64,000 nt of DNA, from NCBI GenBank assembly GCA_964036045.1, contig OZ038379.1:17546001-17610000 (forward strand), in the 5' to 3' direction. Shown piece after piece: positions 40,201 through 63,132 of the stretch. The DNA is from Eutreptiella sp. 'Long Island Sound 2002'. Taxonomy: Eukaryota > Protista > Euglenida. Position numbers and translations under genes: made by a program. Every line of letters begins with the position of its first letter. Positions within the stretch are counted from its first letter, which is position 1. Below the pieces are notes generated by a model. That model made no database searches. It was given only the letters and a program-made list of their open reading frames with translations, and was not told the DNA's origin.

Positions 40201-43200
40201 GCAGAACGGGGGGGGGGGGGCGGACCTCGTCTAAGTCCGGTGTGCCGAGGGTGGCCCGCAGCAGCTGTGGGACATATGGATGGAGCCCTGCGCAGGAGGC
40301 GATTGGACGGTGTCCTGCCCCCTGTGTGACATTCCGTCTGGTTGGTGTTCCTTTACGGGGCCCTGGACAGTCACCTGTTCTTCCCTTCGCATGTTGCGTC
40401 GGGTCGCTGCTTTCTGTCGGCCGCTGCGGCCGGTGCTCTTGCTGGTGTCGTTTCCGCATTCGCGGAGCCCAGTGGTTTTGTGCGTTGGGGCTGTGCTGGA
40501 TGTGGCATGGTGTGCCGTTTGCGTGTCAGTGGCGCCCAATAATTGGCGTATTGAGGATGTGCTGGTTGTTGCCGGGGTTGTTTGACTGTTTTTGCTGTCC
40601 ACGCGCCTCTGTCCTCAGGCCGTCCATAATCTGCCTCTCTGTGTTTCCGTGTGCGTGAGGCCCAGGTGCCCTGCCCCTCCAAGAGCCATGCAATCGCACA
40701 ACACACATCGCAGACGCATCGGCCCTTCAAGAGCCCCCCGAAATGGCAGACCATCGACACGAACACGGCCTTGGCCCTTTGCTGCACCGGCCCCCCCTTC
40801 AATCTCCAGCAGCTCCAAGGCCCCCCTCTCCGGTCAATGCGCACCCTCCCCCTGCAACGGATGGCCTTCCTCCGCGTTGCTCTACGGCGTCCAGACCGGA
40901 ACTCGGCTGCAAACACCACCACCGCATCTTCTTTGCCTCTAGACATCGGAACATCAACTCCACACCACTCCCTTTGAGGCTGGCCCAGCAGCGAACCACC
41001 ACTGCACAAAACCGGGCACAGAACCCATGTTCACCGCCAACCCAATCGCCAACCGGCGTCAACCGCCCTAGACCAACCGCTGCCGACATCGCTTGATCGC
41101 CAACCGCCGTTCGCCCGGCGCCAACCGCTCACGGTCCGATACCAACCACCAGAACCTGACCCCGGGACTTCCAAAGGGCCCTGTGCCTGACCGAGGGCCC
41201 TTGTCCGCGCTCACACCCGTTCATGTCCCACCACGCGTCGACCTCGGAGCCGTAGAGCGCGAAGTCCGTCCCCAGCACATTGGCCGTCGAGGACCAGAGG
41301 TAAGTGAAGAGCTGGTAGGCGTTGAAGGGCACCACGAGGGGGCTGAGGCGCGTGTAGATGGCGTACGTCCCCCCGTTCCGGCGGTACCTGACCACGGGGC
41401 ACCAGCGGAACGCCTCGTTGAAGGCGTCGGCCCCCACGTCCAGCGTCACCGCGTCGCCCGCGGCGCTCAGCTCGACGACGGTGCGCCACTGCCACGCGGC
41501 CTCGCAGGGCCCGCAGGACCCCCCGCAGTCGACCCCCGTCTCGTCGCCGTTCTGGACGGCGTCGTGGCACGTGGCCGCGGGGCAGCAGGGGGCCAGGCCC
41601 ACGAACAGCGCCGTGTTGCAGGGGCCCTTCAGGAGCGGGAGGAGGGCGGACTGCCCCGGGGGGACGTCGCGGTAGAAGATGGACCACCCGAGGGCGTTGG
41701 CGGGAAAGCCCTGCCGCCACGAGTCCCTTGGCGCTGATGACATCAGTATACCTGAGAGAGGGCCGGGCATTGCTCTATCTCCTCGTCTTTCCCTCGGGTC
41801 CGGGGCGATGGTGTAAACGATGGGGGTTTTGTGGGTGAAGGTGAACGACGGAGGTACCGGAGCTCACATTCTGCCCTCGTGGCGTGTGGGTGTGTTTTCC
41901 TTTGTTTTGGGGGGGGGGGAATGGCCAGGGACCCGCAACGCAATTGTCTCAACTCGAATCTGTACCCCTCAGCCCCGACGCAATTCGAACGGCTTCTCAC
42001 GGTTTGCCTCACGCGCTGCTGGTGCTGCTACGCCCTCGTCCGGGGGCCCCGAGGCAGAAGGGGGACCTGGGGCGTCCTTGCAACAGATTGACCCGGAGAG
42101 GTCGACGGTGATGCTGCAGCCCGGATTGTTTGTGAACAAGCGACCATCCCGCAGGCAGCTGTACTCGTCCGGTGCCGCATAGCCGCAGTCCCTCCCCATC
42201 CCGTGGAGGTCCGGGTCCGTAGGGCCCGCCACATCGCACCCTCTCCCATTGATGCTCGCACTCGCTGGCCCCTCGCGGCACGTGGGGAAGCACCCCTGGC
42301 AGTCGTTGTTGGAGTCGAAGGCGTAGCAGCCGGAGAAGCTGGTGGCTTCGGCGAAGGTGATGCTGAGCGCGAACACGTCCACTCCCGTGCAGACATGCCA
42401 GCCAGGGGCGCAGCGGGAGGCGTCCGACACGTGATGCCCCTTCACAGTGCCGGGGCAGGCAGCAATCGTGGGGTACTTGTTCACGGCGGTGAAGCCCGCG
42501 CGCGTGCCAGCGCTGCAGCCCACAGTGCTGGTGCCTGCGAAATCAAAACAGGGGAACATTGACACGAAGGGCACTGGACCCGCCAGTAGAGGAACCAGAT
42601 CCCATGGGGCCAGGGTGGCCGGGTGGCCCCCCAGCGTCACGTGTATGGCACGCCGGTGACAATGAGGGCCAAACGCTTTAGGCGTCGCTTGTGATCATGT
42701 CGCGTGGTCACAACATCAAAAGATCGACTTGACGGTGTTTGAGGTGACCTGCGCCCTCGCATCTTTGGTTGTTGTGCACGGGATCACCCCCCGGTCTGAC
42801 ATCACCCACCGTCCGCTTCGAGCTTCCAGCCCATCCTCGGCGCTGTTTCCAGTGTCGGCAGGCTTCGGCAGGCGTCACAAAAATTTTTCGAAGATTTCGG
42901 CAGGCGCCACCAATCTTTTTTGGCAGGTGTCGGGCGCGCACGCACACAGCTCACAAACTCACATACATGCACCCATACAGCGCAGTGACACGGACAGAAC
43001 ACGCTGGCCCCTGGCCGCATGGCCCAGGGAATGTCAGCAAACGCCCCGGCAGGTACAAGCGGGTGTCAGCAACTCTTTTGGCAGGTCCGTCCCGCGCCAC
43101 AGACCAACCACCGACAGAAGAAGAAACAGAAGGGCACGGGGACATGCAGAATGGCCAGTGCACAGACAGACCGTCCATTTGGGTGGCATCCATCGCCACG

Positions 43201-46200: not shown

Positions 46201-49200
46201 AACCCAGAAACCCCAACATGTCGGCAAAACGAGGCGGCAAAATCCCAGAAACCTAGTGATTCGGCAAAACAAATCGGCGAGATTCAGAAACCCAACAATT
46301 CGGCAGACCAATTCGGCAAAATCGGCCAAATTCGGCCGCCGAATTGGGGGGGGGGGGGGGTTGTACTCTGTGCCATGAAGGCACCGGGAACTCCCAAAAG
46401 GGGGAATGGGGGCTGGGGTGGGTGCGCTCAGGCCCTTCGCATGTTGCGTCAGGTTGCTGCTTTCTGTCGGCCGCTGCGGCCGGTGCTCTTGCTGGTGTCG
46501 TTTCCGCGTTCGCAGAGCCCAGTGGTTGGTGTGCTGGGGCTGTGCTGGATGTGGCATGGTGTGCCGTTTGCGCGTCAGCTGCGCCCAGTAGTTGGCGCAT
46601 TGAGGATGTGCTGGTTATTGCCGGGGTCGTTTGACTGTTTTTGCTGTCCACGCGCCTCTGTCCACAGGCCATCCATAACCTGCCTCTCTGTGTATCCGTG
46701 TGCGTGAGGCCCAGGTGCCCTGCTCCTCCACGCGTTGCCCCGATCATCGACCATATGTCCCTTTCCCCCTCACGGCTGGTCTGCCCCTGGTGGGCTCCCG
46801 CTCCTGTTGCGCAAACAGCCCCACTCCCCACTCGTGAACACAGGAGACCGCTGTGCACCAACACAGGGTACGGCACCTGAAAATGATTCCAGAAAACGTC
46901 GCAGAAGTGGACGTCAAGTACGCGGTTTTGGATGGATGGTTCGGGGAACTGGACTCCAGGTACACATACGTGGCCTCTCCCGTCTCGGGCCCAGTGCTGG
47001 AGGAGGGGGTGCCCCCAGCCCCCCGTGTCCACGTGAAATCGCCCCCGGAAGTGGTCCAGACCCCGTGGCAGAAGCTGCTGGTCCCCGACGCAAAGCGGCA
47101 TGTGTGACTCCCCGACAGGTACTGGTACACATTCCACTGGCTCTGGGATGGCCCCCCGTCCTGTCCGCCCCCGGCCCCACAGCAGCGACACCCGAGCGTT
47201 GGGGATGAGGGCGACCACATCAGGTATCCGTGGCAGTCGGCGTGCTGCACAGCAGCCATGAGGCACTGGGTCAGCTGCGACAGGCCCAGGTCGACGGACT
47301 GGGCCCCACACTCCTGCGCTGAGGCATAGACAACAGCACAGGGGAAGCAAGAGCCACCGCAGTCGGCCCCGGTCTCGTCGCCGTTCCGATAGCCGTCCAT
47401 ACAAGTTGGGGCTGAGAGAGAGACAATGCAGGCGGAACTACAAGTCTCACGGACCCCTGATCTGCACCAGTACATGCAAAAGGAGCGATCGTCCGTCATC
47501 TCTATGGACACGCCAGGTTGTGCACCATTCATGTGGAAGGCCCCCACCCAATGGGGGAATGTTTGCCCGGCGCGTGCCCGGCGCGCTATCTTTGTATTAA
47601 GTATCCTGGCTCTAGCCCCAAGTTTATCCTCACCTAGGGAAGTCCCCCAAGTAGACCGCACTGGACCGCAAATCTTCCCTGCAAAAGCAAGTTGCACAAG
47701 TCGAAATATGAGAATTCAACAACACAAAATGTCACTCCGAATGTGATTAACAAATAATAACATTATTCCCACAAGTGTGGGTGTCAAATACATTCAGGAC
47801 AATAGTGCTCCTTACACTCACCACAAACTGTGACAGTGGAGCGCTTGTGACAACACAACGCACACACTCCTACCTCATCCTCTTTCTCATCACCCCTGCC
47901 TTCTCCGGGGCCCAAAAATGGGTGGATTGGCTTCATAACCCCTGCCTTCTCGGGGGAGCCCAATAGAAGGGGACAAATTCAGAAGTGGCTACATCACCCC
48001 TGCGTTCTTGGGGATAGTTTGGTGGGGGGGGGGGGGGGGGAAGGCAGGGGTGGGGAATGGTCTAGATCTGAAACATGCTCCACACATGATGTTTGATGGT
48101 TGTGGGTGGTCACAGTATCAGAGCGGGAATTCCAAACAGAGGCAATGGGGTAAAAAAGATGTATTTTAATGCCCTTTGATGATGAAGGTTTGATGCATTT
48201 TAATGCATTTTAATCGAAGTACTTGTACTGGGGATGGTGATTTTCCTGATTGTGGCCTAATTAATCTCACATAGAAAAATGCCTACTTTTCAAATCTTTA
48301 TGCAGATACGCAGTCAAGCATGTCCGACATGTTGACTCCACAGTGGACGTCAGCCCCAAACCCACACACTGCTCCACATAAGAGGCAATTGGCCCCTTCA
48401 GTGGCACAGCTGTTGCTTTTGGAATAGGTTGGGGTGTATTTGGGTGCTGACAGAGAACTCAGAAGGGATTGGATTTAAGGGATGCCGCATTGCGCAGAAA
48501 AAAATCAGGAGCAACGCACACATTGCGGACCAGACCCAAATACAATGCCCCAGGGTTGCCACAAAAGCTGAGAAAGTGTGCCGGGTATGTGCCGGTGTCC
48601 GCACTAGCGTCAGTTTCCAGGAGGAAATTATTTACTTTGCGTTCTGCTTCATGGCTTCCAGCCATCCGGGTGGCGCCTGCTGGACTGCCTACATTGCTTG
48701 TGCCAAGCCAACGGGAAAAATATGTTTGGTGGGCGAGACCCCTGAATGCACTTACCAATGGGTCGCCAAAATGCAATACATTGTTCGACCGATGGGGCAC
48801 ATGGGTGTGAGAAACAGGCAAAGAAGTGGAGCCCACTGGTGGGAGCACCATGACTGTGGAAGAGAAACGTCTCAACGGCCTGAGGCACCTCTTTAGGAGG
48901 GCTGAGCCATAGAGGGAAACAAACGCACCGCGCGCACCGCGCATAGCACCGCGCGCTCGTTTTTGGGTTGCTGTTTTATGCACTTCTGGCTGATTTTCAG
49001 TGTGGCAGAAACACGGTGGCTTCAGGGGTTCACATACAACAACGGAGGCCTCCACTCCATCCTCCTCACCATTGCAATGGTGGTTGTAGCTGCCCACACC
49101 CCCTGCCGGGGGGGGGCGTTGAGCTCAAAGAGACCTCCTCGGCACGGCCCACCACCGAGGAGGGTGCCCCGCATGGGTGCCCAAACCTGCGGAGCATTCG

Positions 49201-52200
49201 TTTCGACACGTTTCGCGTTTCGAACCTCACGGGGTGCTCATTCCTGTGAGGTGCCCCATAGGGTGCCCAATCCTATGAAGCATTCGTTTCACAATGTTGG
49301 GGCATTGCACAAGAATAGCAAAAAAAGAGATGTGAGCTGTAATGCAAAGAACCAAAGGAGTGAAGGTAGCCAATCTGAAAAGTAGGATTCAGCACCTTGG
49401 TTTCTGCGGTGCTGGGCTCACAACTCCACACCCATCATCGTCAGGGGCGACGGTCTCCGGGTGTGCCTGCCCTTGCCGAAGGAGGTGGATGATCACAAAT
49501 TTTTGATCCCGCTGCCCTCCCACAAGCTGTACTTATGCTTGTGGGAGAGTGGTGTTTACAGCCCGCAGTGACTAAATGAAAAAATGGTGGGTTAATAAAA
49601 CAACGCGCGCCAAACCGTGCGCACCGCGCGCACACCGCGCATAGCACCGCGCGCACCGCGCGTTCGTTTCCCTCATAAAAGGGAGGGGGAATGGCAGCGA
49701 CAAAATCCGTATGGGTCCTGCTCCGTTTGTCTGTCCAGAGGACATCCCCAACGCTTGGCAATCGAGCCTGTAGACCGCCGGGTCTCGGTGGTGTGGAAGG
49801 CTTTTGCGGTGGACATTGGACAGCAGTACCGGGCGGCCCTTAACGGGAAAAAAAAAAGTTGGCGTTACACAGTTCTCCCAAAAAAGCCCGCGGGCACACC
49901 ATGTGTTGGCGGTGGGCGGTTGGCGGTTGGTGGCAGTTGGTGGTGGTTGGCGGCGGTTGGTGGTTGGGAATTGGTGGTTGATGGCAGTTGGCAGTGGTTG
50001 GCGGTTGGCGGTTGGCGGTTGGTCGCCGCTGGCGGTTGGCGGCGGTTGGCGGTTGGCGTTTGGTGGCGGTTGGCGGTTGGCGGTTGGCGGCGGTTGGTGG
50101 TTGGGGGTTGATGGTCCCTTGGGGCGGTCCCTAAGGGCGGTCCTGAATAAAAAAAATCTAGTTCCATAAGGACCCCCCTGCCAGTACCACGGCAGCATTC
50201 TGCCTCATGGCCTTCCCTCATAAACCAGGCTGGGAGGGCCGAGGCAGAGGGGGATGGGGGGGGGGGGGCACAACAAGGCTGCGGTGCACATCCGCTATTA
50301 TGGGCATTTGCACACAACCATATTGCTCGTCTTATTGGTATTCCTTCTTTTGGCGGGGTCTTCGGTGGTTCATGGTCGGAGTTCGGTTGATGTGCAATCT
50401 AGCGACGGGTTTTATCCTGCTCTCTGTTGTGGTCGGTGGTGGTTTTGTTTTTTTGCATTGGAGGCACTATTTCTATGTCCCGTTGTGGGGGTCGCGGCCA
50501 AAAGCTGCCGCAGGCAGACACATGGGTCAGGGGCCTCCCCACTCTGCGCACAGGGGGATGTGCTGCATACGCGCCGTCGGCTTCCGGAAGGCATGCCACC
50601 CAGCGAAGGGGGAGCAGTCCCATTTGGTCTTCGCCCAGATCGCCGTGGCGACACCCATGTCATCGCTGCCAGTCCACGTGTACCCAAGGCAACTGGCGTC
50701 GTTGCTGCAGATGAACTGAGCCTCCAAAGGGGTCATGGGTACGCCGCCATATCCTTCCAGATCACCCCCACCAGAGATGTAGCCTGGACAGTAGTCCCAC
50801 ACTGAAGCAAAACAGCAGAACGACGTTGGAGGCCAAGAAACTTGCCAATAAGACACGACTAAATGCAGTCCGCTGTGCTGAGTGCATGATCTGAGTCAAA
50901 GGCCAAGACAAGCAGATGGCCGGCTGGGCAGAGAGACCGTCGGTACACCAGAGAGACGGTTGGTTGGTCAGTCAAACCGTCGGTCGGTCAAGCAGGCAGC
51001 CGATTGAGCTGGTTGAGTCGGTTGAGTGTGCACAAATTCGGTTTGGTAGGAAACGCTTGTCAAAAGGTGAAAGAGCAATCAGGCTTGAGCCGTGATCGCC
51101 GTCACGGCCTTCCAAATGATGTTCAGCCTCCCAGACCTTCCTTCAACGCAACGACAGAATATTCGGGTGGGGCTGGGGTCAGCCAACAAGGGCCACTGGT
51201 CGCCAGCCGCAATAGCTACAGGGTTTATGGTCACCCAACATATCCGTGAGGGTGTAACACCCACGACACTTCCGGCTGTCCGCATGACAGAATCCATTGG
51301 GTGTCACCACCACCAGAGCCTGGCAGGCTACCGCCCAGACAAGTAGGTCTGCCCGTCATGAACTAAAGCGGCCCTGAACGGTTCCCCTTTCAGAAAACCA
51401 ACTCACCCACCAATGTCTCATTGGTATTTGCAGCATGCCAAGGGACGACCCCTGGCTGAAGGCTGGGTCTCCAGGTTGGATGCCAAAGTGTCGGGTCAAA
51501 TTGGCTTGTCCTTCCTGCAGGGGATAGGCTCATTTGAAGGGGGGATTCAGATCAGATCTAGCCCCCAACCCTTGCAGCGTGAGCAGTAAGATCCACAGGG
51601 AAGAGGGGGGGGGGTTCGGTTTGGGGGGCATTTTTGAATTCCCTGGTTCGTTCTTGAGCAATTTGAATACACACAAAAGAAATAGAATCTTCTGTTACCA
51701 TTCACAAGGAATGAAAAATCGTCCGGCATTCCAGCAGACGCACCAATGAACCGGCAAAAGCACCCAGCTCCCAGTGTCAGACATTTGTCAAGTGAACATG
51801 ACATGCCATCTCCAACATAGAGAGAAATGTAATGGCTACATAACCCCTACCTTCTCGGAGGCGAGGAATCAAAATGACTGCATAACCCCAGGCCCATTAG
51901 TCATATTTGAATTCTCCATTCAAACCTGAGCATTTCGGATGTAAACGCATCGGATGAAGAATTTTCTGCCCCTGTTCCTAAAAGCCAACAAAACTTTTCC
52001 GGTTGGTGGTTTCCCATCGTTCACCAGTGGTGTGGGGTGGGGGTTCGATTGGTGTAGGTTGTGGGGCCTGGAGGGATGGGGTGGGGTGGTGGGGGGGGCG
52101 GGGGGGTTCGGGCTCATTCTGACTCATCCCTATGGCATGTGTTGTCAAGGAGTAGGCACGAAAACATGTGACACTAGGTGCACATGGGCACATCAGCAGC

Positions 52201-55200
52201 TGGCGAACACGGGCGGCGGGCGGATAATAATTATGAGAGATGCACAAGTGCTGCAGATGGAAAATGACATGGGCCATGGACGGACGGACACGAGCGACGG
52301 TTACCCTCTCAACGCCGTCACCCACCACCCCACGGCCGTCGGTGATAACTTGAATATGACATATGTGTATGGTCACCCCCCCCCCCCACACACCCTTTTA
52401 TTAGGGAGTGCCCTGTCGCCATTGTCCATCCGCCGCCTCTGTCCATCTGCCGCCCACCCATGCCTGTCTGCTCTGCTCCTCTTGTTCCTCTTCTCCCTCC
52501 TCTCTGTCGTCCGGATGCCCCATGCGCCCGGACGGGGGAGGGGTTGGCACAAGGCCATGGAGGGGGGGGGGGGGGGTAAGTAGGCCGGACTGAGACCAGA
52601 TCCCCGTGACCTCCACATGTCCTTTTCTGGGCAGTGGGTGTGTGTCGAGAGGACACCAATGCTCCTGTAGTCACCTGTTCTCGCTTCCACGCCTCTGATT
52701 CGTGACTGCCGCATGGGACATGAAAGCCTCCAGAAGCCCCACAGCCGTGCCCCACACACATCCTGCGCAGTGCGTGTGAATGCAAACGAACAAAGAAAGA
52801 GGGACCTTCCAATAGCGTGACGTCCGCAATGGCAGCATCGCCTGTCCACGAGTCCCCCGTCCTGCCGACAAAGCGGACCTGCTGCGCTGCCGCAGGGAAA
52901 GCGAACCGCGCGTCAGACCAGGCGGCGGAGTCGGCAGTGTGCTGTGCCCCACTGCGGATCCAGACCTGATTGAGGAAATGGAGGTGCATGAGCCCCTGAG
53001 GGCAGCACCACTGGGGCAAGGCAAAACGACACTTTCTCCAACAAAGATGCCGGAAAGGCAAAGAGACAGCCTGCAGCTGCAGTACACATTGACAGTCCGC
53101 TGCCCCAAAACGGGGAGCTGACCGCCATCGGTCAGTGCAATCCAGGCGACCTACTACCTCAGGCCCTGCGGGGTAAAGGAAAACCAAAGTGCCCCACCGA
53201 TGGAGAGGGACGCATGCACGCCACACATGCACCGCGTGGGTTGGCCTACACTACGGAGGCCACCACTCTTCCTCCCCATATCACGTGGCACGGCAGCGTG
53301 GAACACAGGGCGGTAAAGAGCAGAACTGCACCCTTTTCAACCCTTGAAAGCGTCGACGCACACAGCCAATAGCCACTGGGACACCGCAAACAACCTGCGA
53401 CCACGAAGTAGCACCCGAAGGCTTCACCTCCACCTTCAGCGACCCAATAGAAGCTCCGTACATGTGGTACTTGAAGATCATCCCTGAGAACAACATGCCT
53501 GACAACGAAGTCAGGTACGCGGTTTTCTGAGGATAATTGGGAGAACTGGCCTCGAGGTAGACGTATGCGGACCCGGAAGGTCCTCCGCTGGGGCCAGTAG
53601 TACTTGATGGCGTGGATCCCGTTCGCCGCGTCCATGTGAAATCGCCTCCCGAGGTGGTCCAGGTGCCATTGCAGAAGGTGCCAGTCCCCGAGACAAAATA
53701 ACAGGTGCGAGAACCTGCACAGTGGGCACGTGTGGGTGGTGACGGCCCACCACCAACTCGCATACAAGTAGGGGACCCTCCACAGGCTGTGGCAACCCCT
53801 GATGGAGTATTTGTATCAATTAAAAACACACTGGCCGGTGCTGTAGCCAGCGCACAACCCGCCCAAAGAACTGGGAAAGAGTTTCAGGAGTAGCTGGTCC
53901 CGAATTTGTCACCCCCCCCAACCCCCACTGCAGTTCTCCACAAGGCTTGGTGTGTGTGGGGGGTTAGAGGTAGACACATGGAGGCGGTGCATTGGGTGAC
54001 AGGCAAAGGAAGGTGTGAAGTTTGAGAGACGTGTGAATGAAGCCCATGTCTTCCAGCTGTCTGACACAGACTAACTTGCTTACGCGTGATATGAGTTGGC
54101 ACATTGCTCCATGCAGCGCTCACCCGTTGCAGATTTGTGGTTCACCACACTGCACCCCCTGTAGGGGTTCGCAGCTGAGTAGCCGCCAAATGCTGCGGGA
54201 TCTGTTTGGCACAAGACGGTCCAACGGTCCACCCAAGGGTAGCAGTGCCCTACTCGCATCCCAGGGGCTCTCCCTCCGGCCGTACAAGGCACATGCAGAC
54301 GCTGGGAGGTCACAGCACTGGCACAGGCTGCAAGCCCGGCCGCCCCCATCCCCCATTCTCGGGCACAATTTTTCAAACCCTACATGGCGGCCACTGGGAC
54401 TACCGTGCCACTCGTGCAGGTGACTGTAGAGACGGGGGCTGCTAACCAGGAACCAGTTTGCAAATGCGGTTTTCAATATGCTACAATCCTGTCCCTCCTC
54501 TCGGGATGCAAGGCACTTGGGCACTGGCGTTGTTGCCTGGCATCCCCAGTGGCAACAATGCTCACACCTTTGCTTGTACACCCTTTTACACCCCTCACTC
54601 CACACCCTATGTTTGCTGATGTTATATTTCCGCCACTAGTAGTATCATATACCCTTGCATATCCCTGTCACCACCCCACATCCCAATTATGATTAAAATT
54701 GCTTTTAGTGTTGATGACCTTTTGCCATTGGGTCGTTCGTTCGCGCGGTAAGAATTCTCGATGCACGACTTTTTATTTATCCATTTTCATTCCTTTTGGC
54801 CAATCATTGTGGAAAAGATGTGGCGCTGTTTGGAACCATCAGCTTGGTACACCAGCAATCGTCCTGCACTTTCACGGTCAGGCCAAAAACAGGCCAAAAA
54901 CAGGCTGGTAGGTGCGTAAACCACTGGCTGTTGAAGGTATCGTACAGAACAAAGCCCCTGACAGGGCGACAAACATACCGCTGCAAACGAGTTGCGCTGC
55001 ACTTGCCTGTTGCCAGGATGAATCCCACCACTCTTCCCAAGTTGCATTTGTGAAATGAGCAGATGATCGAGCCGATGTGAAGGCGTAGCAGCCGCCCCCA
55101 AGATTCTTGTTCCAATCACCTTGCGAACCAATTCGGTATTTACTGAACTTCGAACACCAGTAGATGTAGTATCTCCCGCTTTTGTCCCAGAATGTTGTCT

Positions 55201-58200
55201 GCCCATTTAACTGCTGACTGTCCTCAACATACAGCGTGTTGAGCTCCGTCTTTTGAAAGCCACTCACAGACACAGAACTGCAACCTGTGAAATGACATGC
55301 AGAAACACCTGCCCTAAGAGCCGTGGGCGTGTGGGATCCGCTGGCTGCTTTGGGTGTGGACACAGTGGTAGCTGCTTGCACAAATGGCCGTTGTGGCCCA
55401 CTCAAATCGGCTGTGGCATTGAGCCTCAGCTTGGAATACAGCTCTTTGATGGGGAAACAGAGCCATTGGCGGCTTGTGCTTCTTTTTTTTTCCGAAACAG
55501 CACTGTGGAGAACTTTATTTAACATCTTGCTGAGCACTCGCAACCCAGGACGGAATTCTTATTGTGGCGACATGACCTTTTGGGCCCGTTGAGTTGGGTT
55601 TGTCCTTGTTCCAACCAATCGTTTTGGAATTGGACGTGCTTCGTTTGGAAGCACTAACTTGGCACACCACTCTCCGTCCCTTCTTCTGGGGATGAAACCA
55701 GCTGAAAGGGGGTCTCACTGAGAAAACAGCCATACCACCGGGGGAATAATTTGAGGGGTTTTTTTGGGGGGGGGGGGGCTAAAATGGGGGAGGGGGGGAT
55801 TTGGAACTGGTCCTTAGAACTGAAGGGAAATTTTGGTATAAGGTCCCTTGCTGTTGCTTCCTAGTGGATGGCTGCTGTTATTTCCTGATGGCCTCTGGAT
55901 GGTTGCTGTCCTTTGACACATCGCATCCTTAAAATTGAAGGAAATATTTGGTACGAGGTAGGGCTTCCAAATTTGTCCACATCAAATTTGTCCCTTTCTA
56001 AATTTTCCCCCGGTGGTAGCATAGGGCCACGGCTTGGATGACTGTTTTTTCCTTATTGATTTTGTGTATGCCCCCAATCACAGTGAAAAAGAATTGGATC
56101 CGCGCAGCAGAGTCCATCTTGAAATCTCAGGACAAAAAGGCCCAAACTGCCATTTTTGACTACCTTTTTGGCTGCTGAGGCACCAATGGCTCTGTTTGGG
56201 CAACCAATCAGCATTAAATTGCCTTTTGTCACAGGCTCCTCCTCCCCCAAGCCACTGTCCTCCTCCTGTCTCTGATTGGCTGTTGGATTCCGGTTTTATT
56301 TTACATGTGCATCCATCCCGGGAGCACAAATTGGAACCACCTTTGGTTGTACTAACGAACCACTCTGGGGTCCATGACACTGTGGGGATATGTATCAACT
56401 CGCCACTTTGGGGTCCCCGAAATGGTAGAGGTTATGTGGATATGTGGATCCCGTTCGCCGCGTCCATGTGAAATCGCCTCCCGAGGTGGTCCAGGTGCCA
56501 TTGCAGAAGGTGCCAGTCCCCGAGACAAAATAACAGGTGCGAGAACCTGCACAGTGGGCACGTGTGGGTGGTGACGGCCCACCACCAACTCGCATACAAG
56601 TAGGGGACCCTCCACAGGCTGTGGCAACCCCTGATGGAGTATTTGTATCAATTAAAAACACACTGGCCGGTGCTGTAGCCAGCGCACAACCCGCCCAAAG
56701 AACTGGGAAAGAGTTTCAGGAGTAGCTGGTCCCGAATTTGTCACCCCCCCCAACCCCCACTGCAGTTCTCCACAAGGCTTGGTGTGTGTGGGGGGTTAGA
56801 GGTAGACACATGGAGGCGGTGCATTGGGTGACAGGCAAAGGAAGGTGTGAAGTTTGAGAGACGTGTGAATGAAGCCCATGTCTTCCAGCTGTCTGACACA
56901 GACTAACTTGCTTACGCGTGATATGAGTTGGCACATTGCTCCATGCAGCGCTCACCCGTTGCAGATTTGTGGTTCACCACACTGCACCCCCTGTAGGGGT
57001 TCGCAGCTGAGTAGCCGCCAAATGCTGCGGGATCTGTTTGGCACAAGACGGTCCAACGGTCCACCCAAGGGTAGCAGTGCCCTACTCGCATCCCAGGGGC
57101 TCTCCCTCCGGCCGTACAAGGCACATGCAGACGCTGGGAGGTCACAGCACTGGCACAGGCTGCAAGCCCGGCCGCCCCCATCCCCCATTCTCGGGCACAA
57201 TTTTTCAAACCCTACATGGCGGCCACTGGGACTACCGTGCCACTCGTGCAGGTGACTGTAGAGACGGGGGCTGGTTACCAGGAACCAGTTTGCAAATGCG
57301 GTTTTCAATATGCTACAATCCTGTCCCTCCTCTCGGGATGCAAGGCACTTGGGCACTGGCGTTGTTGCCTGGCATCCCCAGTGGCAACAATGCTCACACC
57401 TTTGCTTGTACACCCTTTTACACCCCTCACTCCACACCCTATGTTTGCTGATGTTATATTTCCGCCACTAGTAGTATCATATACCCTTGCATATCCCTGT
57501 CACCACCCCACATCCCAATTGTGATTAAAATTGCTTTTAGTGTTGATGACCTTTTGCCATTGGGTCGTTCGTTCGCGCGGTAAGAATTCTCAATGCATGA
57601 CTTTTTATTTATCCATTTTCATTCCTTTTGGCCAATCATTGTGGAAAAGATGTGGCGCTGTTTGGAACCATCAGCTTGGTACACCAGCAATCGTCCTGCA
57701 CTTTCACGGTCAGGCCAAAAACAGGCCAAAAACAGGCTGGTAGGTGCGTAAACCACTGGCTGTTGAAGGTATCGTACAGAACAAAGCCCCTGACAGGGCG
57801 ACAAACATACCGCTGCAAACGACTTGCGCTGCACTTGCCTGTTGCCAGGATGAATCCCACCACTCTTCCCAATTTGCATTTGTGAAATGAGCAGATGATT
57901 GAGCCGATGCGAAGGCGTAGCAGCCGCCCCCAAGATTCTTGTTCCAATCACCTTGCGAACCAATTTGGTATTCACTGTTCCTCGAACACCAGTAGATGTA
58001 GTAAGTCCCGCTTTTGTCCCAGAATGTTGTCTGCCCATTTAACTGCTGACTGTCCTCAACATACAGCGTGTTGAGCTCCGTCTTTTGAAAGCCACTCACA
58101 GACACAAACCTGCAACCTGTGAAATGACATGCAGAAACACCCGCCCTAAGAGCCGTGGGCGTGTGGGATCCGCTGGCTGCTTTGGGTGTGGACACAGTGG

Positions 58201-61200
58201 TAGCTGCTTGCACAAATGGCCGTTGTGGCCCACTCAAATCGGCTGTGGCATTGAGCCTCAGCTTGGAATACAGCTCTTTGATGGGGAAACAGAGCCATTG
58301 GCGGCTTGTGCTTCTTTTTTTTTCCGAAACAGCACTGTGGAGAACTTTATTTAACATCTTGCTGAGCACTCGCAACCCAGGACGGAATTCTTATTGTGGC
58401 GACATGACCTTTTGGGCCCGTTGAGTTGGGTTTGTCCTTGTTCCAACCAATCGTTTTGGAATTGGACGTGCTTCGTTTGGAAGCACTAACTTGGCACACC
58501 ACTCTCCGTCCCTTCTTCTGGGGATGAAACCAGCTGAAAGGGGGTCTCACTGAGAAAACAGCCATACCACCGGGGGAATAATTTGAGGGGTTTTTTTGGG
58601 GGGGGGGGGGGCTAAAATGGGGGAGGGGGGGATTTGGAACTGGTCCTTAGAACTGAAGGGAAATTTTGGTATAAGGTCCCTTGCTGTTGCTTCCTAGTGG
58701 ATGGCTGCTGTTATTTCCTGATGGCCTCTGGATGGTTGCTGTCCTTTGACACATCGCATCCTTAAAATTGAAGGAAATATTTGGTACGAGGTAGGGCTTC
58801 CAAATTTGTCCACATCAAATTTGTCCCTTTCTAAATTTTCCCCCGGTGGTAGCATAGGGCCACGGCTTGGATGACTGTTTTTTCCTTATTGATTTTGTGT
58901 ATGCCCCCAATCACAGTGAAAAAGAATTGGATCCGCGCAGCAGAGTCCATCTTGAAATCTCAGGACAAAAAGGCCCAAACTGCCATTTTTGACTACCTTT
59001 TTGGCTGCTGAGGCACCAATGGCTCTGTTTGGGCAACCAATCAGCATTAAATTGCCTTTTGTCACAGGCTCCTCCTCCCCCAAGCCACTGTCCTCCTCCT
59101 GTCTCTGATTGGCTGTTGGATTCCAGTTTTATTTTACATGTGCATCCATCCCGGGAGCACAAATTGGAACCACCTTTGGTTGTAGTAACGAACCACTCTG
59201 GGGTCCGTGACACTGTGGGGATATGTATCAACTCGCCACTTTGGGGTCCCCGAGATGGTAGAGGTTATGTGGACACTTTGGTTTATCCCCGCTTTGGGGC
59301 CTTTGAGACGGCAGTGGGTATCCGCTTTCCATTTCATCCCCGCTTTCGGGTCCCCGAGACGAAAGTGGTTACAAAGACACTCTGGGTCATCCCTGCTGGG
59401 GGGTGCTTGAGGTCCTCCAATCGTAATAATAATCAGGTAGAACAATGACAACAACAACTGCAGCAACAACAACAAGTGCCAGGAAAAAAATTTCTCCCGA
59501 ATACCAGTATGATATTGGACGTTCAACCCTTTGTAGAATCATCATTATGGGAGATAAAAGTAACCCCCAATGACTTTTGTGAACTTTAATCAGCCCCCCC
59601 CCCCCCCCCCCGCCCGCCCCAGCTGGGTGCCGCTTTTTGGGGGGAGGGTGAGATGGGGGGGAGGGGGGTCAAACTTTGGTTGGCCTGTTGTGGCCAGTAT
59701 ACGTCGAGCCAAACCCAGGTCCCAATGCCTTTTCCTTCTGTATGGACCCCTGAACCGATGGTGGGGGTCCCGGGTTCCATGTCTGGGTAAATCAGCCCCA
59801 CTATATGGGGCCCCTCTAGCGAGGACAGCCGTCATGGGTTGTGCCATTGGCTAGGTACCTTGTGCGAGGCTCTGGGGGACAACAAATCTATGTGCACATG
59901 TTCAATTTGCCCGAAGCCTGGATACCATATATACCCGCCTTACACCCGCCTTACATATACCCGCCTTCAATGATGTTTCAGTAGCAATCTACGAAAAGCA
60001 CGGGCACTCAGAGCATACCACGGCACGCTGTGCAGGATCCTCCACAATCAACACCAGTCTCGTCGCCGTTTTGTACCGCATCAGTGCATGTTGTTGGAAC
60101 TGCACAACACGCCACAGGAGAATCCCAGTTAAAGCTCAGGGCACACACACACACACACAAATGGGGTTGAACGGTCACAGTTTAATTAGGAGCAGCAGAG
60201 TTGCACAAGTTGTTCACAGTGACGACTTGTTGCAACGGACAGGGATTTCCATTGATTGTCACGGTTGCTGAAACAGAACAATCCAACATACAATGCAACA
60301 TGCAATGCGGTAAACACAGAGTGGAATCTCCAATTGCCTGTGCACCAAGCAAAGATCTTACCGCCCAAACTTTTAAAATTTGCGAAACCTGCATTTTTGC
60401 GAAGGCCCCAACCTTGGAATTAATTTTTTTTGCGATTATTGTTTCAATTTGCGTTCACAAACAAAGCTAGTGCATCCAATTGAATTGTCCATGCATACAA
60501 ATGACACACTGCGGGCCCAGACATGAGCAATTCATCATCATGAACAATTGAATGAAATCAGTACATCCCAATTGACTTGTCTAGGCGTGCATGAAAGCAG
60601 GGGGTGGTCAGAATTTTGATGCCTGCCCAATATTTCTCGGGGACATTCAGAATATGCCAACTTTGTGGGTTTTGGCACTTTTCGGCATTTTCTACAAGTT
60701 TTGCTTCCATGTGCAAACATGTTGTCACCTGGGGGGGGGGGGGGGGTATGTGTATACTTTTTGAAATCTGCAAGAAAACGCCATTTCAGAAATTTATGGG
60801 TTCGGGGGGGGGTCACATTTCTCAGCGTAGCACAACACATTGGACGGCGCACACAAACATGGCACTGCACCGTTCATCCATTTTTACTCTGAATCACTGT
60901 CATCGTCAGCATTCCCTTTTTCAGGCAGGGCTGGGACCCCATTAGGGCAGACATCCCCATGTTTGTGGACAGGGACATATTTCTTCACTTTTTGCCAATC
61001 CTGCAACCTCCGTGCCTTCACTGGCACCCAGCCTTCGTCAAGGGGCATGGCCCACAGGCCATCGGTTGTGAGGTGCACGTTTCGTTGTTTGAGCAACCCG
61101 CTGTACGAGGCTTCTTGGCCTGCCTGGCAGGCTCCCGAGGCACCTTCCTCCAAGTTTCACCCCCAGAGCGTGCCCTTTTGCAAACCAAAGGCTTTTGTGG

Positions 61201-63132
61201 TGCAGCTGGGGAAGCAACAGCCCATGGAGTGAATTTGTATGTAGACATGGTAGCTGCCTGCTGACAAAAGGAGGCAGCAAGCAACACAGGCACCGTCCAA
61301 AACGGACGAAAATCTCAAACATGTTGTCAGTACAGCATGCAGACCCAGGGTGTTCCAAATAGCCCTTTCCAAGGGCTTTCCGAATATACCCCACATACCC
61401 CTACCTCCGGAACACTCAGTGGGCACAAATGAGGCAACAATGGCACCGACCCCCGAAAACCCACAAAGTTGGCATAATCAGCAACGTCCCCGAGAGATAT
61501 ATCAAAACCAGAAACTCAGAGCTCATAACTTGATGCGTAGAATTCATCAAGTTTTTGCGATTATTTGGAATTTTGCGTTGTCCTTGTTGATTGTACGGCT
61601 AGAATGTTTTTTTTTCGCAATCAACTTTTGTTTGCGTGGAACTAACTTTATACGCACGGCCTACCCCAGAATTAATCAGCTTTAACTTTCCTCAAGTTTG
61701 ACCGGTGATGTTCAATGTGTTCTGCAGTTCACAGTCCAAACGGGATCAGCTAACTTGATACCCGAAAATGATTGCAGTATTTCAAAAATGCCAGGCACTT
61801 CGAATTACCAAGCCGGCTTCAAACTTTCCGGGCAAGCTGTGCTCGGAGTGATTGTGGTGATCTTCTTCTATCACATCCTTCAAACACTTTTCCAGGCATA
61901 TGGGTAGGCTTGGCATTCGTTAGTTTCTTCAAACTTTACTATTGCAAAAGTGCCAGCGTCGAAAATCAGGCCCAACAAAGGAAATCCCAAGACAGTCTGG
62001 GACTCTGAGTACCACAAAAATCTCTGGGGTGTGGAATTTTATGAGCCTCAACCCCCCCAACCTCCAACCCCCCATTCGAGTGCTTTGGCCAAAGGGGATG
62101 ACGCCAATTGTCAAATGTCACAGTCGGTCCCTATCCCCAAGTTTTCTCCACCACACCAAAGGCCCCTGAAATACACAGCACCCCAAGCACCAAGCACACC
62201 AAGCACCCCCCCACCCAAGCCTTCCTCATCGCTTCTACACAACCCCTACCGTGGTTACCTTGTGTGCTGGTGTTGGTGTGTGATGAGATGCTACGGCATG
62301 TGCTGCACGTGCTTCTGACTTGCCCATTAGTTACCCCCAGTTGTTTGGTGCTTAATCTAGCCCCGCACAGTTGCGGCCTGCATCACTCTCTGCTGCTACA
62401 TCAGCGCTGGACCGTTGATGCCATGACACCAAGAAAAATGGCTACGGAATTTTATGTACCATGGCATAATTTGGCACACTTTTGCTGTGCGAAATTTTGT
62501 CGTCCCAAACTTTGCTTTTTCCAAATCCCCCCCCCCACGTACAACAGACACGTGTAATCTGCAAATCCAATGCTGCCCTAGAAGGCACCAAGAAGGGTGG
62601 GGCTGGAGGTTGGACTCCCCCCCCCCTGGGGATGCTTGTTAAATGGAGCTCTGGGGTCGGTGAGCGGTTCTAGTTGATCCCCACACCTCCTGTGGCCCAC
62701 CGCCCGGAGGGCTGGACGGGGATTCCCGTAAGAAACCCTGAGACATTGGACAAAAAAAAGGGGGGGTGGGGAGTGGGGGATGGCAAGGCTATGGGTGAGT
62801 GGTGGAGGGGATCGTGGGGGAAAGGCTGTGGCACCGTTCTAACAACAAAAGCATGGGCTCAACACAACGACCTGAGGCATCGACACATGGATCTCCACCA
62901 ACACATCCGTGGGCAGCTGCACAATTCAGTGCCTTCACGGTGGTGCTACCCGTCTGGAGGTTCAGTGTTGCGCAGGAAGTTGCATCCGTGCACTGGCATG
63001 CGCAGTCTGAGTAGCACATCGAAGTGCCCCCAGGGCATCCAGAGCAACACGCCCAGTCCACTGTGCTGCGCCCGTTGGGGTCGATTTTCCAGTACGCCGA
63101 GGGGCAATTTGATTGATTGCCAGCCGTAAATC
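7028..63132 (-). CDS. Giant multi-exon gene (25 exons traced, about 6,020 aa, 5'-incomplete): modular receptor with 3 TM helices and a cytoplasmic ADP-ribosyltransferase domain
   Basis: Open GC-rich exons are each flanked by ..AG acceptors and GT.. donors, and intron phases match at all 24 junctions. Domains read through junctions, e.g. DEAE|VLFRP, YATDS|ENDGW, IIF(R)|YHMYG, SWSQ|VWIR. Stop TAA at 7028-7030. Confidence 0.8.
9603..9848 (-). CDS. Exon 24: catalytic core of an R-S-E type mono-ADP-ribosyltransferase
   Basis: LYRG (R), WPAFSSAS (S-x-S) and FPDEAE (E-x-E). 246 nt, phase 0-0. Confidence 0.9.
11350..11450. repeat. Dispersed repeat with an inverted relative at about 16700-16800
   Basis: cctgctttcaactgc..ccaaccgttttgtaaccgcc is the approximate reverse complement of ggcggttacaaaaccgttgg..gcagttgaagcagg. 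Confidence 0.6.
11690..12769 (-). CDS. Exon 23: WWE-like domain, unknown region and the N-terminal helices of the ART domain
   Basis: WQTHVGDGLWHTYPNFVQQQIAQG..V..FLDLVELQQ; VYTYE..IYSAMNRAMR. 1080 nt, phase 0-0. Confidence 0.88.
13670..14058 (-). CDS. Exon 22: cytoplasmic linker (YLYYY..YTVGWCVSDYLG module and a basic segment)
   Basis: gctgcag acceptor, gtggcc donor, phase 1-0. Confidence 0.8.
15308..16460 (-). CDS. Exon 21: three TM helices, a LIM-like zinc finger and an ankyrin-like repeat
   Basis: Three hydrophobic stretches; Cx2Cx23Hx2Cx2Cx2Cx18Hx2C; TAWHCAAAAGNLPQLRALL. Phase 0-1. Confidence 0.88.
18239..22329 (-). CDS. Exon 20: four RCC1 repeats, a Ser/Thr mucin-like stalk of about 1,090 aa and a small juxtamembrane domain
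   Basis: 4091-nt open frame, gcaacag acceptor, gtcagc donor, phase 1-0. Confidence 0.88.
22352..22420. repeat. (CACAA/CACAG)n pentamer array next to the exon 20 acceptor
   Basis: Directly visible. Confidence 0.85.
23036..24109 (-). CDS. Exon 19: Cys-rich/sushi-like segment, three RCC1 repeats and a Cys-rich insert
   Basis: G.N..GQLG...TP..L...I..VA.G..HT.F occurs three times. Phase 1-1. Confidence 0.88.
24553..24886 (-). CDS. Exon 18: GON-like domain
   Basis: QYINLP..TTWQKLRI..VDQTDTTYTTSNG..WGVAKDC..YRLSLVGTPFRV resembles the ADAMTS9/20 GON core. Phase 0-1; the donor could be 3 nt further. Confidence 0.72.
25145..25234. repeat. (CAA)n microsatellite
   Basis: Directly visible. Confidence 0.97.
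25340..25701. repeat. (CACAT)n pentamer array, degenerate at the left end
   Basis: Directly visible. Confidence 0.95.
25908..27155 (-). CDS. Exon 17: discoidin/F-type-lectin-like domain and repeated CL..G.Y.F..DGW.GG beta-sandwich modules
   Basis: 1248 nt, phase 0-0. VREVRLWPR..LALAEVEVF; CLAAGAYTFVATARYGDGWRGG. Confidence 0.85.
28123..28329. mobile_element. hAT-like MITE, 207 bp
   Basis: Perfect 13-bp TIRs CAGGGCTTCTTTT / AAAAGAAGCCCTG and an exact 8-bp TSD ACGCACGC at 28115-28122 and 28330-28337. Confidence 0.88.
30035..31317 (-). CDS. Exon 16: discoidin-like and LamG/concanavalin-like domains, then start of a small beta-sandwich
   Basis: FVGIRL..VQYVAWGRD..FTLQYT..MRLVV; ARLLVNGEQ..WIG..LRGVIG. 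Phase 1-0. Confidence 0.85.
32800..33302 (-). CDS. Exon 15: unknown beta module (YVDRDWRFVTLG..PWIAAEGW)
   Basis: gttccag acceptor, gtacgc donor, phase 2-1. Confidence 0.78.
34877..35877 (-). CDS. Exon 14: copy 2 of the unnamed repeat, a Cys module and a discoidin/F-type-lectin-like domain
   Basis: HLHIREIEAY..RTIDGDYDTQYHS..WVEWVL..VKLWN. Phase 0-2. Confidence 0.82.
36753..37090 (-). CDS. Exon 13: farnesoic-acid-O-methyltransferase-like beta domain
   Basis: FEVQALTNAHLGL..YEFVIGGWGNTRSVLRR..W..G.LSVG..WMSW.D matches the Methyltransf_FA pattern. Phase 1-0. Confidence 0.8.
38344..39074 (-). CDS. Exon 12: end of the lectin-like module, a CQD..GW.D.DG..C..Y module, and copy 1 of an unnamed ~110-aa repeat
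   Basis: ccctcag acceptor, gtatgc donor (alternative donor 3 nt away), phase 2-1. Confidence 0.8.
40383..40680 (+). repeat. Dispersed ~300-bp repeat, copy 1
   Basis: Direct-orientation, highly similar copy at 46433-46729 (cccttcgcatgttgcgtc...cccaggtgccctgc). Confidence 0.88.
41217..41751 (-). CDS. Exon 11: NGDETGVDCGG module and start of a lectin-like module (NVLGTDFALY)
   Basis: Phase 1-2. Joins exon 12 to give DMNGWRYCNYGDADVGFPRDCG, a motif I recall from Aplysia egg-lectin-like sequences (unverified). Confidence 0.8.
42067..42534 (-). CDS. Exon 10: Cys-rich extracellular module (GCSAGTRAGF..IAAC..CAPGWHVC..)
   Basis: ttcgcag acceptor, gtcccc donor, 468 nt, phase 1-1. Confidence 0.8.
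43172..43644 (-). CDS. Exon 9: C-terminal part of MAM domain 2 plus an unknown module
   Basis: YHMYGADMGSLSV..W..AQV..VRFVGVTGSLYTGDAAVADV. Phase 2-1. Confidence 0.85.
43931..44010. repeat. Minisatellite, 5 perfect copies of GGGTGTGTGAATGTGT
   Basis: Directly visible, followed by degenerate GT-rich sequence. Confidence 0.95.
45224..46363. mobile_element. 1.14-kb TIR element with a 6-bp TSD and a zinc-finger ORF remnant
   Basis: TIRs CAACC..CCCCCCAATTCGGCG / CGCCGAATTGGGG..GGTTG, TSD TACTCT at 45218-45223 and 46364-46369, and AATTCGGC subterminal repeats at both ends. Confidence 0.72.
45461..45524 (+). promoter_or_regulatory. Possible tRNA-derived Pol III A/B box pair
   Basis: TGGTTGAATGG at 45461 (A-box-like) and GGTTCAAACCC at 45514 (B-box-like). 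No convincing cloverleaf. Confidence 0.35.
46433..46729 (+). repeat. Dispersed ~300-bp repeat, copy 2
   Basis: Matches 40383-40680. Confidence 0.88.
46877..47411 (-). CDS. Exon 8: NGDETGADCGG module, Cys module and N-terminal part of MAM domain 2
   Basis: ctctcag acceptor, gtgccg donor, phase 1-2. Contains the MAM motif TPSSSTGP..YVYLESS. Confidence 0.85.
47890..48010 (+). repeat. Short repeat family built from TGGCTACATAACCCCTGCCTTCTCGG subunits (also about 44380-44450 and 51830-51890)
   Basis: The same subunit motif recurs two to three times at each of three intronic sites. Confidence 0.65.
49907..50105. repeat. (GGCGGTT)n-like degenerate heptamer array; a more degenerate reverse-complement array lies at about 41030-41150
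   Basis: Directly visible. Confidence 0.88.
50571..50801 (-). CDS. Exon 7: PAN/apple-like Cys module (GYISGGGDL..MTPLEAQFICSNDASCLGYTW)
   Basis: gcttcag acceptor, gtatgc donor, 231 nt, phase 1-1. Confidence 0.7.
52806..52965 (-). CDS. Exon 6: MAM domain 1, C-terminal part
   Basis: VWIRSGAQH..WSDARF..QVRFVGRTGDSWTGDAAIADVTL. Phase 0-1. Confidence 0.85.
53395..53714 (-). CDS. Exon 5: MAM domain 1, N-terminal part
   Basis: WTRRTGSTPSSTTGPSGG..YVYLEASSP..FKYHMYGASIGSLKV matches the MAM consensus. Phase 1-0. Confidence 0.85.
54979..55284 (-). CDS. Exon 4: duplicated ectodomain module, copy X1
   Basis: ttcacag acceptor, gtatgt donor, 306 nt, phase 1-1. Lies 2832 bp from exon 3. Confidence 0.78.
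55735..56016. mobile_element. Tc1/mariner-like (TA-TSD) MITE; second copy at 58567-58849 created by the duplication
   Basis: TIR CCACCGGGGGAA / TTCCCCCGGTGG flanked by TA on both sides. Confidence 0.7.
56395..56546 (-). pseudogene. Truncated copy of the first MAM exon, cut by the duplication junction and running into a stop
   Basis: Identical to the start of exon 5 (GSRTCYF...WTRRTGS) with the acceptor intact, then reads TYPHNLYHFGDPKVAS* in non-homologous sequence. Confidence 0.75.
57811..58116 (-). CDS. Exon 3: duplicated ectodomain module, copy X2 (GCRFVSVSGFQKTELNTLY...WEEWWDSSWQQASAAQVVCS)
   Basis: ttcacag acceptor, gtatgt donor, 306 nt, phase 1-1, open frame. Confidence 0.7.
60019..60099 (-). 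CDS. Exon 2: 27-codon Cys-rich module PTTCTDAVQNGDETGVDCGGSCTACR (not in the supplied ORF track)
   Basis: gtgcag acceptor and gtatgc donor, phase 1-1. The same motif recurs in exons 8 and 11. Confidence 0.8.
60635..61495. mobile_element. Degenerate TIR element enclosing ORF fragments
   Basis: Perfect 21-bp inverted repeat at 60653-60673 and 61456-61476, plus a 10-bp inverted repeat at 60635-60644 and 61486-61495. True ends not resolved. Confidence 0.5.
62872..63132 (-). CDS. Exon 1 (most 5' exon found): Cys-rich module GFTAGNQSNCPSAYWKIDPNG...CCSGCPGGTSMCYSDCACQC
   Basis: Acceptor tctgcag at 63133-63135, phase 1. Donor gtcgtt at 62871 or gtagca at 62949, both phase 1, so the 3' boundary is uncertain. 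Confidence 0.55.

Follow-up and report, generated by a model that had tools for sequence, protein, structure and literature searches.

Tandem duplication of an exon, followed by divergence of the copies and their use as alternative, often mutually exclusive exons, is known genome-wide in animals, where it has produced arrays such as that of insect Dscam. The process itself being already described, what we add is a case in a euglenid, found in a stretch of 64,000 nucleotides (nt) from Eutreptiella sp. 'Long Island Sound 2002' (assembly GCA_964036045.1, contig OZ038379.1, positions 17,546,001 to 17,610,000 of the forward strand), referred to below as the window. Inside a gene on its minus strand, a real tandem duplication of 2.83 kb holds two copies, exon A and exon B, of a 306-nt exon that encodes one complete domain, here called the X domain. 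The two exons differ by replacements and by no clean synonymous change, the rest of the duplicated unit is nearly identical, and both exons are transcribed and spliced. The explanation we favour, to which we give about an even chance of being correct, is that the duplication would be older than it appears, that its introns would have been homogenised, and that selection would maintain or drive two versions of the domain with different functions, which probably serve as alternative exons.

The comparison with described systems can be made on three sides. As in the tandem-exon duplicates of animals, homologous exons of equal length and phase lie in tandem, each encoding one whole extracellular-type domain, and the exon sequence to which each is found joined downstream is the same; both copies, which are homologous neighbours, measure 306 nt, are in phase 1-1 and have identical splice sites. 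Their length is divisible by three, so that the joint inclusion of A and B is possible, and unlike the classical arrays, the unit includes the following exon in truncated form and its host is a euglenid and not an animal. On the other hand, the near-identical introns, the few coding differences and the mosaic divergence recall the concerted evolution of tandem repeats in which sites under selection escape homogenisation, as in arrays of leucine-rich repeat or other repeat exons, with the difference that two copies only are present here, so that the pattern is a single pairwise comparison, and that the variable positions, placed on a predicted structure, appear to be distributed over several strands and loops and to form no single obvious face. 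Finally, a MAM domain that reaches significance in Pfam follows a signal peptide and Cys-rich modules, as in the extracellular MAM proteins meprin, A5/neuropilin and RPTPmu; unlike meprin, A5 and RPTPmu, no transmembrane segment and no catalytic or phosphatase domain was found here, and the X domain belongs to no described architecture of MAM proteins.

Self-alignment of the window gives one direct repeat, whose units of 2,829 and 2,830 nt (Table 1) are 99.15% identical and are separated by 23 substitutions and one single-base indel (at 58598); the coordinates which the initial annotation had read from the letters by eye are borne out by this exact alignment, and self-comparison of the window found no other long repeats besides this pair of units. 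The sequence at the junction is ...ATGTGGA / TAT / GTGGATCC..., and the combination of a 5-nt microhomology and a 3-nt filler marks a rearrangement that is real. Positions 53300-59299 were then compared with contigs from four public runs: a run of DNA (X1), a run with a different organism label and from a different study (X4), and two estuary metatranscriptomes (X6 and X7). In X1, a contig ends exactly at 53612 and shares k-1 letters with the flank contig, which constitutes a branch of the graph at the repeat boundary, and the depth is 41.3 within the repeat versus 23.6 in the flank (about 1.75x), figures that are compatible with a roughly single-copy junction contig. X4 contains both the exact A-type exon sequence (54932-55103; record 9) and the exact B-type sequence (57855-58395; records 13 and 14).

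The initial annotation had itself warned that the two copies could be alleles of a single-copy region, set in tandem by the assembly. The only assemblies showing the tandem arrangement are the window and ENA contig L010, which match over 16 kb with 0 mismatches, so that L010 does not count as independent evidence, and none of the listed read pieces spans the full 5.7 kb. Nevertheless, collapsed alleles would give equal depth, whereas the depth inside the repeat is about 1.75 times that of the flank and the graph of the read contigs branches exactly at the boundary; the junction, which interrupts an exon, is clean and bears its filler and microhomology; and a unit of 2.8 kb is short enough to be contained in single long reads. 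An artefact of this kind is hardly credible, and the tandem duplication is real.

Table 1. Coordinates of the duplicated units and of the surrounding gene in the window (position 1 is its first letter)
Feature	Position	Strand	Evidence
Probable exon 1: ATG and signal-peptide-like hydrophobic stretch, phase-1 donor	62157..62229	-	inferred from sequence
Exon 2: 81-nt Cys-rich module, motif NGDETGVDCGGSC, phase 1-1	60019..60099	-	sequence; motif also at 47406-47338 and 41596-41501
Duplication copy B, upstream in gene order	56444..59273	-	self-alignment; same layout in ENA contig L010
Exon B (gene exon 3), 306 nt, phase 1-1, X domain	57811..58116	-	alignment; RNA contig X6 record 17; X4 records 13 and 14 exact
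Truncated MAM exon copy: intact acceptor and first 103 nt	56444..56546	-	sequence
3-nt filler at the duplication junction, TAT on the + strand, flanked by 5-nt GTGGA microhomology	56441..56443	-	junction read from sequence
Duplication copy A, downstream in gene order	53612..56440	-	self-alignment; X1 contig end at 53612
High-copy genomic repeat in the duplicated intron	55700..56100, twin 58500-58900	.	summed contig depth 10^4 to 10^5 in X1
Exon A (gene exon 4), 306 nt, phase 1-1, one whole X domain	54979..55284	-	alignment; RNA contig X7 record 24; X4 record 9 exact
MAM domain exon 1, complete; contains the duplication boundary 53612	53395..53714	-	Pfam PF00629
MAM domain exon 2, C-terminal part of MAM	52806..52965	-	frame and splice sites; paralogue match

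Exons A and B are bordered by AG...GT (...cag / gtatgt...), with splice sites identical between the copies. All the junctions of the gene up to the first MAM exon are in phase 1, and the join between the two MAM exons is in phase 0. The truncated MAM exon left upstream of copy A reads on into the intron sequence of that copy and meets a stop after 15 codons.

The distribution of the differences within the unit is highly uneven. Thirteen of the 23 substitutions fall in the 306-nt exon, at positions 54991, 55041, 55068, 55078, 55134, 55141, 55146, 55147, 55149, 55172, 55173, 55275 and 55277 of copy A, the other ten and the indel in the 2,523 nt outside it; the counts of the initial annotation and its list of replacements are matched in full by the exact alignment. 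The 13 changes include five within 16 nt and two adjacent double changes, and they replace 11 codons (S2R, S3F, R37T, K45R, F46N, K48E, R50Q, T69A, R72Q, T81N and L98V). By the Nei-Gojobori method, 12.5 nonsynonymous differences are counted over 243 sites and 0.5 synonymous difference over 60 sites, this half being due to one of the possible paths between AGA and ACT, and the exon shows no clean synonymous change. Both copies are intact, with an open frame, all four Cys and all the invariant or near-invariant residues of the domain (G8, F9, N15, W32, G63, W82 and E84). The net charge is 0 in copy A (isoelectric point 6.7) and -4 in copy B (isoelectric point 4.6), and copy A carries an N-x-T sequon (N79-A-T) that is missing from copy B. 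Residues 45-50, placed from the secondary structure of the predicted model, would form a turn and one face of a hairpin, where positions 48 and 50 would alternate with the conserved inward-type columns of Y49 and I51.

Compared with all the non-exon sequence, the exon is some tenfold more diverged (4.25% versus 0.4%; Fisher test, odds ratio (OR) 11.1, p=9e-8), as the initial annotation had anticipated, and the excess remains when adjacent doublets are counted as single events (p=1.4e-6). The non-exon baseline is itself a mosaic. Its ten substitutions are clustered, five in 54442-54766, four in 56292-56421 and one at 55310, and two stretches, 53612-54441 (830 nt) and 55311-56291 (981 nt), contain none; the two largest gaps attained this size in 200,000 random placements with p=0.003. 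Such a clustered mosaic probably results from copy-to-copy gene conversion that homogenises the two units. If this is so, the non-exon divergence of 0.4% underestimates the neutral divergence, the duplication is probably older than this figure suggests, and the tenfold contrast probably reflects homogenisation between the copies. Indeed, outside the identical tracts the contrast falls to about threefold (4.25% versus 1.4%, OR 3.1, p=0.009, in an overall range of 0.001 to 0.009).

The contrast taken over the whole unit is an argument for a very young duplication, of 0.4% neutral divergence, in which 13 point substitutions would have been fixed by very strong positive selection (omega about 13). 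This scenario leaves the clustering of the non-exon differences and the two long identical tracts unexplained, and it requires that 11 of 101 codons were swept while 10 of 2,523 neutral sites changed; we regard it as improbable.

What remains when the identical tracts are set aside still singles out the exon. The most diverged patch of the unit, 54991-55310, nearly coincides with exon A, its borders lying within 12 and 26 nt of those of the exon, and the other unconverted non-coding patches show a divergence of 1.5 to 2.7%. The probability of at least 12 nonsynonymous changes is 2e-4, 0.003 and 0.036 at neutral rates of 1.4, 1.9 and 2.7%, respectively. The initial annotation's proposal of strong diversifying selection thus keeps part of its basis, since the exon is the most diverged patch and the replacements spare the invariant residues, and loses another part, since the excess of nonsynonymous over synonymous changes that it proposed to check does not reach significance. 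Its concern that the introns might prove similarly diverged, or that synonymous changes might have been overlooked, is likewise answered in two ways: no clean synonymous change exists in the exon, and the non-exon divergence is unevenly spread and amounts to 1.4% outside the identical tracts.

Could the exon copy, being redundant, simply have gathered random changes, about 80% of which would be nonsynonymous by chance, while conversion happened to miss it? Conversion is at work according to the mosaic pattern, the exon taken by itself shows no significant nonsynonymous excess (p=0.06 to 0.09), and at a true neutral divergence of 4.25% the 12 nonsynonymous changes would be unremarkable (p=0.34) and the absence of synonymous ones would have p=0.08; furthermore, the truncated MAM exon that follows exon B could render the B transcripts unproductive. 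Against drift stand the intactness of both copies in frame, in their four Cys and in every invariant residue, the transcription and splicing of both, the lower divergence (just 1.5 to 2.7%) of the other unconverted non-coding patches, and the coincidence of the diverged patch with the exon borders, within 12 and 26 nt, which would rarely arise by chance. We hold neutral drift to be unlikely.

The use of the two exons was read from the RNA contigs. In X7, record 24 shows exon A spliced to the MAM exon with no mismatch, and in X6, record 17 shows exon B joined to MAM-exon sequence; exon A contigs are also present in X6, at similar depth. Both exon copies are therefore transcribed and spliced. 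Record 25 of X7 extends 403 nt upstream from the acceptor of exon A, and in this run the depth is zero on exon B and does not rise at the start of the MAM exon, from which it follows that both exon B and the truncated MAM exon are excluded there as the upstream partner of exon A. Taken together, these joints suggest that A and B appear to be used, at least in part, as alternative exons.

The differences might also have been imported, either by patchwise conversion from a third copy, unassembled or lost, or by unequal crossing-over, if a single-copy exon had two old, balanced alleles and both were captured. An import of this type would account for their tight clustering (five in 16 nt, with two adjacent double changes) and for their confinement to the exon, the part in which a diverged donor would still be homologous; and the environmental RNA does contain A-type and B-type exons, each directly joined to MAM sequence, and in X7 the A type alone is present, as the existence of single-exon strains would predict. 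The search for a donor was made in the assembled genome (2.28 Gb, 2,317 contigs) at the DNA level, the queries being the exon and the two variable cores of 81 nt, and it found copies A and B only, with no third copy and no matching patch; the next best protein match in this genome is 29% identical and lies on another chromosome. The contigs of X1 and X4, which lose rare variants, show no alternative letters at the exon positions, and a scan of metagenomes gave no matches. The patchwise conversion from a paralogue that the initial annotation had offered as its second explanation is thereby left without a donor in the assembly, and the capture of alleles would account for replacements unaccompanied by synonymous differences only with the help of balancing selection. 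An imported origin seems to us unlikely.

The model we propose for an older, homogenised and selected duplication combines these observations as follows. A join of the microhomology type would have created the 2.83-kb tandem duplication and thereby given the gene a second 306-nt exon for the complete X domain. Later, copy-to-copy gene conversion would keep about two thirds of the unit identical. Selection would favour two charge-distinct versions of the domain, either by driving the replacements or by rejecting the conversions that erase them, and the density of mismatches would then further hinder conversion across the exon. Exons A and B would be used, at least in part, as alternatives.

Several observations weigh against this model. 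In the comparison of exon dN with linked non-exon divergence, dN is significantly higher except when the baseline is limited to the two non-coding patches of highest divergence, a conservative choice made post hoc, for which the excess is 2.3-fold with p=0.07. Within the exon, the contrast of nonsynonymous with synonymous change falls short of significance (by site, p=0.057; by codon event, p=0.089), since nonsynonymous sites make up 80% of the total. The 11 replaced sites show no enrichment in the most variable columns of the family (p=0.45), two of the replacements are CpG-type changes of CGA to CAA, and the two adjacent double changes are possibly single mutational events. The changes are not polarised, the comparison being one of two sequences without an outgroup, and the metagenome scan gave no close orthologues that would polarise them. 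As to the RNA, the 86 MAM letters of X6 record 17 all lie in the duplicated part, so that the full and the truncated MAM exon fit them equally; the contigs are environmental and assembled, a process in which minor variants are lost, and strains that have one exon only, of the A or the B type, could yield them.

If the selection reading is true, the locus offers a very early snapshot of the birth of a new alternative domain exon, in which one can still see the breakpoint, the half-exon left behind, the introns after homogenisation and the first functional differences, in charge and glycosylation, and this in an organism about whose extracellular recognition proteins almost nothing is known. It also carries a caution: the identity of introns in tandem duplicates is an unsafe neutral clock, because conversion can erase divergence. 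Could this be a recurrent route, by which tandem cassettes of exon plus intron, their introns kept identical by conversion and a few surface residues driven apart, would be used alternatively and would diversify secreted recognition proteins? The present locus, with its two copies, would then represent the youngest stage of protist arrays analogous to the variable-exon arrays of animals, a generalisation that we find distinctly doubtful.

The order encoded by the gene is, as far as the sequence allows it to be read, signal peptide, Cys-rich module, X domain and MAM domain, from which a secreted or extracellular product is a fair inference. The membership of the MAM domain is given by the translation of 53281-53829 on the minus strand, which matches PF00629 over profile positions 3-99 of 158 with E=4.9e-7 and 30.2 bits, versus a cut-off of 26.4. 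From the MAM domain to the start of the next gene near 50850, no transmembrane or hydrophobic segment was found.

The exon itself, which encodes one complete domain of about 100 residues between the Cys-rich module and the MAM domain, matches no family of Pfam even at E up to 10, the searches being made exon by exon. A profile-free search of 1.8 billion representatives retrieved 105 relatives at E<=1e-3, often with two or three copies per protein; one is labelled as a dinoflagellate transcriptome and the rest as environmental. The closest (about 40% identity) carry two copies after EGF repeats, and the more distant ones are joined to calpain proteases. The X domain thus looks like an undescribed domain family that is widespread in protists. 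In the protist data, more than 100 relatives (P0002-P0105) have EGF, calpain, TSP1 or EF-hand domains as partners.

AlphaFold, supplied with an alignment of 42 sequences, predicts the domain with a mean pLDDT (predicted local distance difference test) of 97.2, as a mostly beta structure with one helix. Foldseek found no solved structure in the PDB at E<=0.001, the ESM Atlas contains unnamed look-alike clusters at a TM (template modelling) score of 0.83, and a search of the protein atlas by features likewise gave unnamed clusters only. A word-index protein search for transcript-derived fragments with the exon and a 215-residue open reading frame (ORF) returned the genomic ORF cluster only. A segment of DNMT5 proposed by a wide VIA structural search reached a Z of 7.3 only, which is middling, and was not treated as homologous. 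The initial annotation had inferred selection on a ligand-binding surface, of the kind known from immune or self/non-self receptors. Nothing in these results bears out that idea: the exon has no Pfam match and no clear match to a solved structure, no transmembrane segment follows the MAM domain, and the relatives associate the X domain with EGF or with cytosolic calpain. The status of receptor ectodomain has no direct support for the MAM/X protein.

Other features of the window concern the surroundings of the gene. The Cys-rich motif of exon 2 (NGDETG-x-DCGGSC) occurs three times on the minus strand (60019-60099, 47338-47406 and 41501-41596), each time followed by a different domain, with a MAM domain following in the first two; this recurrence could correspond to a cluster of genes for modular secreted proteins or to one very large modular gene. 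Downstream of two MAM-type modules lies a 300-nt direct repeat of 93% identity (40383-40681 and 46433-46730), probably a dispersed repeat. At about 50765-50880, on the minus strand, there is another start that resembles a signal peptide (MHSAQRTAFSRVLL...), with a Cys-containing exon (50530-50895) after it; the gene that lies next to the MAM gene on its downstream side probably begins here. Between two genes, the long open frames on the minus strand at 49575-50400 consist of heptad-like repeats rich in Pro, Thr, Ala and Asn (QPPTANR type) in low-complexity DNA. The element at 55700-56100 and 58500-58900, in the duplicated intron, shows many 'goes back 41-50' joints and is apparently of very high copy number, with an internal periodicity of ~45 nt.

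Rfam gave no matches in the window. An affinity with dinoflagellates, which the first named relatives had suggested, was rejected, the dinoflagellate spliced leader having 0 matches in the genome and the PCP family none. A 24-nt sequence that we take to be the Euglena-type spliced leader has 5,458 matches in the genome, versus 0 for the reversed control, which marks the organism as a euglenid; the matches are dispersed on both strands over the chromosome-scale contigs.

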